A DNA stretch of 64,000 bases from Camelus dromedarius. Lineage: Eukaryota. The position numbers and the translations under genes are program-made. The notes under the pieces were generated by a model. The model had not been told where the DNA came from. It made no database searches and saw nothing but the letters and a program-made list of their open reading frames with translations. Of the stretch, positions 58,470 through 64,000 are shown in pieces. The stretch covers positions 73,284,001 to 73,348,000 of the forward strand of contig NC_087440.1 in assembly GCF_036321535.1 (NCBI RefSeq), in the 5' to 3' direction. Every line of letters begins with the position of its first letter. The stretch's first letter is position 1.

Positions 58470-58630
58470 TATCATTTGCAGAGTTACTTCAATGGTACAG
58501 GTGACCTACATAAATTATTTCATTTAATTTCTATGAGGTAGGATGAGGAAACAGGTTCAGAGAAGTCAGGTCAATTCCCCAAGATCACACAGCTCATTGT
58601 TGACTGAGCCTTGATATGAAATCTGAGCTG
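58470..58630 (-). mobile_element. MIR SINE
   Basis: GATGAGGAAACAGGTTCAGAGAAGTCAGGTCAATTCCCCAAGATCACACAGCT. Confidence 0.75.
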
Positions 58631-59523
58631 TATTCAAAGTTAGAGCTAATTCCTCTCTGCAATACTATCCTGCCTCTCTGTGATTGTCCAGCCCGACCGT
58701 TTCTTCTACTGCTTCTTCTCCCTCTCCTCCTCCTCCTTCTCCGCTCTTTTCCATTAGTATCTCGTTGTCTTTGCCTTTTTTTCCCTCCAAGGGTACATTC
58801 ACCGACTCCTGTCTAGAGCCGAATTTGTAGCCACAAGGCAGGATAGAAGTCTTTGTTTCCAAGCCAATGGGCTGAGTTTCCAGAGGCGTTAATTCTAGGG
58901 TTTAGTGCTTTCCCATATAAAATCACTGAAGGATGGTGTCTGAGGTTATTTCATTGGCCTCTGTGATAGGCCCTGAAGTGTAATTTATTCCACAGTCCCT
59001 GGACACACATGTTCATACTGTCTGGAACAGGCTGTGCTTGCCTTTCCCAGAAACCTTCACCCAAACAGGACCAGACGTAGATCAAGGTCTGCCAGCCCAC
59101 ACCCACCACAGAGGTCTGTCCTCTGCAGACCATGTTGCTGCTAAGCTAGAAATAATCCGTGGTGTCTCACATCCCCCCCCCCTGTTTTTTTTCATTCTCT
59201 TTAATGACCAACTCTATCAGCACTCAAAATGAATAAGTGATAGGGTTTGTTCTTCTTCCAGACTCTTCAGCTTCCCATGGTAATTTGCATGTTCGAGGGG
59301 GAAATCCATTAGGAGAAGCTAAATTGATTAAAAGATAATAGAATTTGGAGAACAGGACTCAGTGAATCACAAATAAATGTATTACTTTCACAGTTGTTGC
59401 AGTAGCTCAGTCCAGGCTTAGTCCTTTCACCACAGGGCCAAGGTGCTTGGAGCATCACGGAGTGCTTGATAAGAGCAGATGAAAGGAGAAAATGATCTCC
59501 ATAGATAGAAAGTTTAGATTTAA

Positions 59524-59838
59524 TAGTCATCCCTCCATATTTGCAGGGGATTGGTNNNNNNNNNNNNNNNNNNNNNNNNNNNNNNNNNNNNNNNNNNNNN
59601 NNNNNNNNNNNNNNNNNNNNNNNNNNNNNNNNNNNNNNNNNNNNNNNNNNNNNNNNNNNNNNNNNNNNNNNNNNNNNNNNNNNNNNNNNNNNNNNNNNNN
59701 NNNNNNNNNNNNNNNNNNNNNNNNNNNNNNNNNNNNNNNNNNNNNNNNNNNNNNNNNNNNNNNTTTAAAAAAAAAATTTTCAATTCCTAGTTGTTTGAAT
59801 CTGTGGATGCGGAACCCACAGATATGGAGGGCTGATAG
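59524..59838. mobile_element. MER2 (Tigger family) element spanning the assembly gap
   Basis: Left end TAGTCATCCCTCCATATTTGCAGGGGATTGGT; right end GGATGCGGAACCCACAGATATGGAGGGCTGATAG followed by TA. Confidence 0.85.
59556..59763. other. Assembly gap (208 N)
   Basis: Run of N. Confidence 1.
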
Positions 59839-59968: not shown

Positions 59969-60593
59969 GAATTCTTAAGGGCATAAAGGCAAAAATTAAC
60001 ACTGTAAAACATAAAACAACTAAAACAGCAATAGAGTCTTGCTCCCCAAGCTTAGTCACTAATACCATTGAGAAATGCCAGGAATTGGGATGTAGAAAAG
60101 ATCTCAGAGATCACAGGAGCCATCCAGGGACCACAGAAGAATTCTGGTGCTGGAAAACGTTGGCAAGGCTCTATTCTCATCACTACTCCTTAATCTGCAT
60201 TTACTCCTTAGAGCCCATGTAGGGACCACGTGGGTGGAAAATATTCTCCCAAACCAGCAAGAAGTAAGTCTCTTTTGTTCTGTATGTCACGAATTCCGCA
60301 TGCTGTCTGGTTGGAGAGGAAGGTCTGACCCTGAAGTTCTCACGCATTTGCTACTGTTTCAATAGGTTGATCTTCAGTGAGGTCCCGGCTTGTCTCCATC
60401 TGTTATTTCTGGAGTATTTTGGCCTTCATCTGGAGGAAGGTGACAGGAAAGCATTCTGTTCCTGCAGAAAATTTGCTTGTCATCAGAGTAACTGTGTACT
60501 GTCGAAACAGCCACTGCCTACATACATCGCTCTGCCTCTTGAAAGCTAGCATTTTGGTGTGAATCAGTTATGAAAAGTGAGGAACACCACCCC

Positions 60594-61893: not shown

Positions 61894-62176
61894 ATGACTT
61901 AGTGGAAAATGTGCAGGTAAAGACCCGTTCTCCTCAAAGTTCTTTCTAACCCTACAATCCCATATTTCTTTCTCACTCTCGGGGATGATGGCTTTGCCAG
62001 TGCTGCCTGCACTGTGCCTTTGAAATGAGAAATGACAATTAAAATGAGAACATTCAAGTATTTTAAGATAACTGTCCAATAGCCTTTGCTTGTGGATCTC
62101 GTTTGAGTGGTGAATGTGTGCCCACTGATCTCCATGCATGGGGCCATCTAATGACTTTCATCTGGCCATTTTGGAA

Positions 62177-62279
62177 AGAGTTACAGCGGGAGTCCTCTGT
62201 AGAATGTCCTCTAATGAGGGGAGAACAGTTGTAGCCACTAGGGACATTCTTGATGTTGGATCACTCCCACTGTAACTCT
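62177..62279. other. Long imperfect inverted repeat (two-stem hairpin) of unknown origin
   Basis: Outer arms 62177-62193 and 62263-62279 (16/17 pairs); inner arms 62201-62213 and 62239-62250 (12 bp with a 1-nt bulge). Confidence 0.85.
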
Positions 62280-63353
62280 CTTGCCGCAGAACAGCAAGAG
62301 TTCCCTTGGTCCGCAAGTCAACCAAGATCTGGGTATCTAGGCCTAACTGCATGCATCCTGTCATTTGACATGACTTATGTATTCTGTTGTAAGAAAAGGA
62401 ATGGAGTCCTGATAAATAATATATCCGTATTCCAGGCATCGGTTTTATAGATTTCACTTGAATCAATTAAATTTGTAAGTAAAATTATATTCTCATGTCA
62501 TGTTGACTATAAAAAATAAGGTGACAGTATTATACCTGTTCTGTAACCTCACATCAAATGAATATCTAGAAAATCTCTCATGCGACCAGTGGGTCATTTA
62601 AGTTTCTTGTTAGCTATATGTATTCTACCTCTATTTCAGAATGTAGCGAATATCATGTTATTTTTAAGACTTCTAAACTGATGATTAAATTTCAAATAAT
62701 TTCCATGCCAAATGTCCTAAAATTTTTTGATGAAAATCTGATTAGCTTTGAAAATCAAAATTTTTTTAAAAAAATCAACATTACCATGATTTCAAGTCCT
62801 AATCTGCATTTAAGTCCACCTTTAAAATTAAATACTGTCAGGATTGTACACTCAGAGGCTTTCTTGGAAAAATAGCTTATACAAATGCCATGTGCAGATA
62901 CTTATAATTGGCAATATAAACACAGGAAGTGATGTGGAAAAATAACTTCTTTTGTTCATATTTGTAAGCTTTATTTGTTTCCATCTTTAAATAGACAGTA
63001 AAACTGTTTATCATTCAAACCAAATCCATTTGTTCCATTGTCTATTAGTTTCTATCTCCTCACACTTGGATTGGAGGCAGGGAAAACAGGCCTTGAAAAC
63101 GCCACGGGAAAATAATTCTTGCGCAGACTCTGTCTAACAGAATTAAGAAATTAATGAGAGATGCTTGGTTTGGACATATGGTGCTTACGTGAACTGGAAA
63201 ACTTTGATTTGAGCTGGTTCAAGTTTTAATACACCATCCATACACACATATATTTGGACAGATATATGAGATTTGAGAGATTTGGAAAACTTGGTCCTTT
63301 CCTTGCCTTTTGTGAGCAAGTGGTGATCTATGCTGTTTGCCTCTGTGCCCAGC

Positions 63354-63431
63354 TAGAATGTCTTCTAACAAAGTGAGAACGGTTGTAGCCACTAGGGACA
63401 TTCTTGATGTTGGATCACTCCCACTGTAACT
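63354..63431. repeat. 78-nt direct repeat of 62200-62277
   Basis: 72/78 identical; last 50 nt (63382-63431 versus 62228-62277) identical; offset 1154 bp. Confidence 0.95.
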
Positions 63432-64000
63432 TCTGAGGATAAGTGGATAGTAATTCTCTTTAGCCGTAAGGGTGCCATAGTGCAGCTGTTCCTATCACAT
63501 CTGTGCGTGTGTGCTTCTCTGTGTGTGTGTTTCTGAGTGTATGTGTGTACGAAGTTAAATGATCTTTAGTATGGGTTGGTCGCCAAAACCATAGTGTGAG
63601 CACAAGTCTTCTATGTAAAGAAAACTGCACCAGAAGAAGGAGCCACATCTATAGAAGATACACAGAAATACAAGAAAAGTCGACGTCTGACCCTTTCTCT
63701 CCTTTCACTCTACCTCGGACAGCTAGTTTCACTAAATAAAACCATGTTATTATCACTACCATTTCTAGAGGTCCTTAACTTGTCCCCAGTGTTTAGCATT
63801 TCTGCAGGTGTGTTCTCACATGTCCTGAATGAAAATGCAAACACAGAAACAGAAACACACACACAGATTGATACATTTCATATAGTAAGTATATATATAT
63901 TCTATTTTATGCACATACTTAAAATATAAACATCTTAAGCTAAGAGAAACATTAAGTAATGGAAGAAAACTAGCAAATTGTGCAAGATACAGCAAATTTA

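Follow-up and report, generated by a model that had tools for sequence, protein, structure and literature searches.

The element that occurs twice in the window is a duplicated sequence and not a duplicated hairpin, and a robust hairpin exists at copy 1 only. The window is the whole stretch of DNA that was analysed, 64,000 nucleotides long (NC_087440.1:73284001-73348000), in an assembly of 2.3 Gb and 171 contigs. Copy 1 owes its stronger fold mainly to an outer arm that copy 2 does not have. Neither copy bears any mark of a small-RNA gene, and errors in DNA copying most likely produced the arrangement as an ordinary side effect. As a particular course of events, we give about even chances to a functionless product, in which a palindrome made by template switching was later partially copied in direct orientation within a giant intron.

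Extent and copy number of the direct repeat

The repeat and its left edge comprise the following features.

62200-62277, plus strand: direct-repeat copy 1, 78 nt (self-comparison and genome BLAST)
63354-63431, plus strand: direct-repeat copy 2, its last 50 nt exactly as in copy 1 (BLAST)
62194-62199, plus strand: CCTCTG, left edge of the homology at copy 1 (alignment of the copies)
63340-63353, plus strand: CCTCTG with an 8-nt indel (TGCCCAGC or GCCCAGCT), left edge of the homology at copy 2 (alignment)

Alignment of the copies confirmed the duplication described in an earlier note on this DNA, which had reported 78 nt with six differences in the first 28 nt followed by 50 identical nt. The copies agree at 72 of 78 positions and lie in direct orientation at an offset of 1154 bp. 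Mismatches were found at repeat positions 10, 16, 17, 19, 21 and 28, and five of these six are transitions. The divergence is thus 21% in the first 28 nt, with no mismatch in the final 50 nt. A shared left edge had also been reported, and CCTCTG indeed precedes both copies, with the 8-nt indel in copy 2. Including this edge, the direct homology extends over ~85 nt. The flanks beyond were said to be unrelated and are so: even at a blastn word size of 7 they revealed no similarity outside these ~85 nt.

The repeat was then compared with the whole genome. Against 2.3 Gb the copy-to-copy match has an E value of 1.7e-23, far above chance. BLAST at E<=10 placed the repeat in exactly these two places, as did six-frame protein and sequence-profile searches, and the next-best profile match after the two copies had an E value of ~0.8. 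The many dispersed copies that the earlier note had named as evidence against its reading are therefore not present, and with just two genomic copies a repeat family, an interspersed repeat or a MITE was rejected. The 1071-bp spacer that separates the two copies occurs once in the genome. A tandem duplication of the full 1154-bp period that later decayed was likewise rejected as the simple explanation, since the flanks retain no residual similarity and the spacer has no second copy. Two copies only, unrelated flanks and a single-copy spacer together argue for the copying of a short piece rather than for a decayed 1.15-kb tandem or a repeat family. A local self-BLAST of 284 kb of the region (window 60413-60448 masked) gave no other short local duplicates of this kind.

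An assembly artefact had been raised as a concern. Six DNA runs from three studies contain 0.99 of the sampled words from 61900-63700. The occurrence of these words in independent DNA runs demonstrates that the duplication is real.

The differences between the copies are unevenly distributed. With a uniform spread, all six would be confined to the first 28 nt with a probability of 0.0015, and 0 of 50 against 6 of 28 is the one feature that a purely neutral account explains poorly. An identical 50-mer beside 21% divergence could reflect constraint or gene conversion. More broadly, the pattern may stem from constraint acting on the 50-mer, from conversion over a short tract, from error-prone synthesis beside a junction or from one multi-nucleotide event. 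A template for the variant cluster or for the 8-nt indel was sought on both strands of 60600-66000, and no match of at least 9 nt was found. The 50-nt identity next to diverged sequence, in a single-copy and repeat-free setting, would also suit a duplicated cis-regulatory DNA element, such as an enhancer module, that selection on the DNA itself has maintained. However, nothing singles out such an element here, and we regard it as very unlikely.

The palindrome at copy 1 and its folding

Copy 1 sits within a strong palindrome of ~110 nt (62172-62285). The arms that are relevant for folding are listed below.

62172-62193, plus strand: outer 5' arm of the copy-1 palindrome; inverted repeat of 17 nt, 94% complementary, or ~22 nt with one AG slippage
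62263-62285, plus strand: outer 3' arm of the palindrome at copy 1; the direct repeat includes its first 15 nt
62201-62250, plus strand: inner inverted repeat of copy 1, arms 62201-62221 and 62235-62250, loop of ~13-17 nt (from folds)
63417-63431, plus strand: duplicate of the outer 3' arm, located where copy 2 ends; second possible partner of 62172-62193
63319-63330, plus strand: earlier-proposed upstream partner arm of copy 2; paired in the minimum-energy fold, which is not above chance

The outer inverted repeat that had been assigned to copy 1 was verified. Segments 62177-62193 and 62263-62279 are complementary at 16 of 17 positions, and if one AG slippage is allowed, ~20 of 22 positions match the reverse complement of 62263-62285. 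The outer 5' arm exists at copy 1 only. The outer 3' arm extends ~8 nt past the right end of the direct homology. The two positions at which the palindrome is imperfect form G-U pairs on the minus strand and A-C mismatches on the plus strand. Four of the six differences between the copies lie in the inner 5' arm, at sites that are palindromic in copy 1 and not in copy 2.

Folding energies were compared with those of shuffled sequence and are given as z-scores.

Copy 1 (62170-62286), plus strand: -43.7 kcal/mol, z -3.5
Copy 1 (62170-62286), minus strand: -51.3 kcal/mol, z -6.8
Copy 2 with the proposed upstream partner, plus strand: -30.1 kcal/mol, z +0.93
Copy 2 with the proposed upstream partner, minus strand: -28.0 kcal/mol, z +0.02
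Shared inner hairpin, copy 1, plus strand: -14.5 kcal/mol, z -0.4
Shared inner hairpin, copy 2, plus strand: -12.7 kcal/mol, z -0.9
Shared inner hairpin, copy 1, minus strand: -18.6 kcal/mol, z -3.6
Shared inner hairpin, copy 2, minus strand: -12.3 kcal/mol, z -1.45

The inner inverted repeat of copy 1 is significant on the minus strand only. In the complete copy-1 stem, an asymmetric internal loop of 7x12 nt divides an outer stem of 17 bp from an inner stem of 9-16 bp. For copy 2, the earlier note had proposed that 63319-63330 pairs with 63411-63425. This pairing is present in the minimum-energy fold, but its z-scores of +0.93 (plus) and +0.02 (minus) give it no standing above chance. To call copy 2 a hairpin was thus too generous, as it folds no better than its shuffles on either strand.

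From the conserved arm and the diverged loop side, two clustered paralogous small-RNA hairpins had been deduced as the main inference. We found this unsupported, since copy 1 alone folds significantly and Rfam gave no match. Some features do agree with two miRNA-like hairpins that share a conserved mature arm. The identical 50-nt block spans a 3' arm, and homology restricted to ~80 nt is also typical of old tandem miRNA copies. In the inner stem, the change from C to T preserves pairing on the plus strand as G-U, exactly the wobble that had been claimed. Two homologous units of ~80 nt, ~1 kb apart in what is probably an intron and with one arm highly conserved, also resemble known clusters of paralogous miRNA hairpins. 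In contrast to such clusters, the second unit is unfolded, the arms are not co-conserved, the internal loop is large and there is no Rfam family.

The fold statistics largely refute clustered hairpins. Copy 2 equals its shuffles on both strands, and the inner hairpin that the copies share falls short of significance on the plus strand. The proposed partner arm of copy 2 would leave an internal loop of 26x8 nt. The 5' arms are not co-conserved between the paralogues, with the outer one missing from copy 2. In a pri-miRNA cluster, each hairpin would be expected to have a stem of ~35 bp, interrupted by no more than small bulges and closed by an apical loop of 10 nt or more, which is not what the two copies show. 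At copy 1 the overall stem length is roughly right, but the 7x12-nt loop breaks the stem and falls where a miRNA duplex would sit. Rfam 15 at the gathering threshold yielded 0 matches in the whole window and, at E<=10 over 61900-63700, nothing that overlaps either copy. The profile search of the genome revealed no third family member. Based on the inner hairpin, the 5' arms and the internal loop, we consider a small-RNA cluster extremely improbable.

A snoRNA reading was rejected. A C/D or H/ACA snoRNA would be expected to show box motifs with a terminal stem or to match a family model. The only Rfam matches are below threshold and lie in the AT-rich spacer, none over the copies. These C/D-box snoRNA-like matches (62632-62756) score 17-22 bits against gathering thresholds of 55-70, with E values of 3.7-8, and were judged to be chance.

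A different possibility is that the copy-1 hairpin by itself is a functional structured RNA in pre-mRNA and copy 2 a non-functional partial copy. Candidate roles would be those of an intronic miRNA that is young, restricted to the lineage and derived from a template switch, of a target for ADAR editing, or of a stem that regulates splicing locally. The significant fold on both strands favours this, as does a position that appears intronic and transcribed. The A-C mismatch on the plus strand lies mid-way in the 17-bp helix, and ADARs favour an A-C mismatch within a helix. The arm of ~38-42 nt is also near the 35-bp preference of pri-miRNAs (PMC10710096). However, the asymmetric 7x12-nt loop occupies the position of the miRNA duplex, no Rfam match was found, the pairing is better on the probable antisense strand and template-switch hairpins are mostly without product (PMC10710096). 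We therefore hold a functional copy-1 hairpin to be unlikely. If copy 1 did yield a lineage-specific miRNA, the locus would gain importance.

Genomic setting and probable origin

The strand composition around the repeat was analysed in sampled blocks of 8-10 kb over 480 kb. On the plus strand 30 of 30 blocks are richer in T than in A and 27 of 30 are richer in G than in C, and the summed skew of ~0.07 shows no trend. The skewed span covers NC_087440.1:73084001-73558000, that is, the window and the sampled flanks. An excess of T and G is the composition of the non-template strand in mammalian introns (PMC2927911). Since the uniform skew matches this composition, a very large plus-strand transcription unit probably surrounds the repeat. 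Replication can add to strand skew and could produce part of the asymmetry (PMC2817419). Neither the window nor the next 20 kb downstream contained a CpG island or an evident coding exon, and the sampled flank blocks contained no clear CpG island. One block of 400 nt at the window-equivalent position 69701-70100 (73353701-73354100) is the only one in 84 kb with a GC content of 0.54 and a CpG observed/expected ratio of 0.55, and is at best a weak CpG island. Within the window, 208 consecutive N at 59556-59763 represent an assembly gap or masked sequence.

RNA-seq libraries of 0.7-1.0 Gb labelled as reproductive system contain 76-85% of the words of 61900-63700, with the spacer included. This is beyond any DNA carry-over and indicates that the region is transcribed, and largely unspliced, in those samples. 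Among the runs labelled "reproductive system metagenome" (two studies, 0.4-1.0 Gb each), coverage of 61900-63700 reached up to 85%. Intronic-looking words in metatranscriptomes suggest that these libraries carry abundant host pre-mRNA of the locus.

We propose that the following events took place in single-copy DNA deep within this very large, probably plus-strand transcription unit. A short DNA palindrome would have arisen at 62172-62285, most simply via template switching during replication. A piece of ~85 nt would later have been copied once, in direct orientation, to a site 1154 bp downstream. The copied piece would be the interior of the palindrome and most of its 3' arm, without the outer 5' arm. 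In this scheme neither copy would serve as a small-RNA gene in its own right or count as a demonstrated exon. A side effect would be that nascent plus-strand RNA contains a strong stem-loop at copy 1, whose 5' arm has a distant second partner at the end of copy 2. We infer the mutational mechanism, the order of events and the sense strand from these features, and the lack of function from the absence of evidence for one.

Several observations argue for this origin. The G-U pairs on the minus strand, the A-C mismatches on the plus strand and the better minus-strand fold favour a palindrome formed at the DNA level over a structure selected in the sense RNA. The 3' arm continues ~8 nt past the homology and the left end of the homology adjoins the 5' arm, which makes copy 2 a partial copy of the palindrome. 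With regard to the order of events, a CG in the 5' arm corresponds to CA in the 3' arm of both copies. Loss of CpG is the commonest mammalian substitution, so the palindrome is probably older than the direct copy, as judged from this single site. The arms carry one transition and one slippage, and the palindrome event is therefore not recent.

Near-perfect inverted copies of adjacent sequence are the mark of template-switch palindromes, and the arms of copy 1 have this form. Template switching makes thousands of intronic hairpins, mostly without a product (PMC10710096, PMC8794818). The palindrome shares with such hairpins (Monttinen & Loytynoja, PNAS 2022, PMC8794818; Monttinen et al., PNAS 2023, PMC10710096) near-perfect arms that are tens of nucleotides apart in transcribed, probably intronic DNA, and here too the structure reads better as a DNA event than as a stem selected in RNA. 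It differs in that part of the palindrome was apparently copied later in direct orientation. Template switching, or two pieces of one palindromic element, had been offered earlier as alternatives, and these fit better than the small-RNA cluster they were set beside. If this ordinary origin holds, the locus is a clean example of how a short replication-linked rearrangement makes a strong intronic hairpin. Its partial copying would give one arm two alternative partners, and in this respect it would only illustrate published models.

Two possible partners for one arm and the exon-like units

The duplex energies of the outer 5' arm (62172-62193) were calculated for all windows in 60600-66000. The local partner (-28.9 kcal/mol) and the partner in copy 2 (-24.8 kcal/mol) are the strongest in this region, and the other windows have a median of -9.8. 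The earlier suggestion that the copies could cross-pair holds in this form, in which the single outer 5' arm fits the 3' end of either copy. One sequence is thus complementary to two downstream duplicated segments, as in docking/selector arrangements with at least two selectors. Duplication of one arm of a stem-loop has been described as a source of competing docking/selector structures (Ivanov & Pervouchine 2018, PMC6071210), and the layout found here matches this published model of partial stem-loop duplication by analogy. As in the model (PMC6071210) and in ATE1 exons 7a/7b (PMC7797038), arm a is single and a' is duplicated together with an exon-sized unit, and both a' and a'' can pair with a. 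In contrast to both, our searches gave no sign that the units are exons. The selectors here coincide in part with the putative donor and do not lie in the intron, and the duplicated piece measures no more than ~85 nt and shows no remnant of a longer tandem duplication.

An exon-like unit can be delimited in each copy, of which the first is given here.

62203-62271, plus strand: exon-like unit of copy 1, 69 nt, tag/A...ACT/gtaact, with one open frame (translation)

Both copies read tag/A...ACT/gtaact, are 69 nt long (a multiple of 3) and have one open plus-strand frame. Homology begins at the pyrimidine run and tag in both copies and ends exactly after gtaact. In the open plus frame the copies differ by three synonymous and two replacement changes. 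Duplicated exons would show homology confined to the unit plus its splice signals, equal lengths and a common open frame, as seen here. The antisense frame is equally open and has the same third codon positions, and the codon pattern therefore does not discriminate. That AG and GT bracket the homology, that one frame stays open in each copy and that such duplicates are rare in 284 kb all count against a neutral copy.

Based on these features, the units may be unannotated tandem alternative exons of 69 nt on the plus strand, which is the likely sense strand, with 62172-62193 docking to either exon end and donor as a switch between competing structures. The one arm with two strong partners fits this, and the layout is the one predicted in PMC6071210. 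Exon-sized homology bracketed by AG and GT and two units of equal length with the same open frame are also found in tandem exon duplications and mutually exclusive exons (Acta Naturae 2022, PMC9013439; NAR 2021, PMC8373072). The present case differs from these by its apparently weak splice sites, by the lack of protein support in our searches and by 50 nt without synonymous change.

The splice sites were scored by consensus from general knowledge and not by MaxEnt. The donor ACT/GTAACT lacks the G at -1 and the G at +5. The upstream pyrimidine fraction is 0.50 at copy 1, where the acceptor tract lies inside the stem, and 0.72 at copy 2, where the 8-nt indel makes an extra, competing AG 4 nt upstream of tag. 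By this scoring, the donor, the copy-1 acceptor with 50% pyrimidines within a stem and the competing AG at copy 2 tend to speak against tandem exons.

No protein evidence was found for the exon-like unit of copy 1. The 23-residue peptide is absent from 1.84 billion representative proteins, and the six-frame search gave no paralogous exon elsewhere in the genome. The sole protein match, obtained with the 48-aa plus frame against the same 1.84 billion, was a bacterial repeat protein aligned in seven weak stretches and was rejected as spurious. Pfam gave nothing for the plus-strand peptides or the minus-strand ORFs, and no homologues were found for the minus-strand ORF of 102 aa. Exact look-up of seven local ORFs in the collection searched found none of them, a codon-degenerate 41-nt pattern had 0 matches in metagenome contigs and pieces of the sequence had 0 matches in full-text literature. 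The presence of the exon in a protein was therefore not observed.

The RNA data are also at odds with tandem exons, as the libraries contain the spacer as well as the units. No RNA run under another organism label contains the sampled words, in a search of the runs for 109 nt by 7 sampled words, which is too coarse to separate spliced from unspliced RNA. An old duplication, with introns that had decayed past recognition, would furthermore require zero change at all synonymous sites over 14 codons. Together with the uninformative codon pattern, this leaves a reading that the AG/GT bracketing and the open frame suggest and that the apparently poor splice sites and the missing peptide have weakened. 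We consider tandem alternative exons quite unlikely. If the two 69-nt units did serve as alternative exons, they would be a young vertebrate case of exon choice by competing structures. A working docking/selector switch, in which 62172-62193 would mask the donor of either 69-nt exon in a giant gene expressed in reproductive tissue, appears more doubtful still and has only a slight chance of being correct. If true, it would be the Ivanov-Pervouchine mechanism caught early in evolution, in a mammal-sized genome.

Two simple-sequence features were also noted in the window. A purine-rich low-complexity simple repeat at 58597-58901 translates to R/G/E/K runs on one strand and to L/P/S on the other. 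An imperfect (TG)n tract (63518-63547) and a (CA)n-rich tract (63838-63867), 290 nt apart, form an inverted pair of 30 nt at 83%, which is simple-sequence complementarity and not a specific structure.
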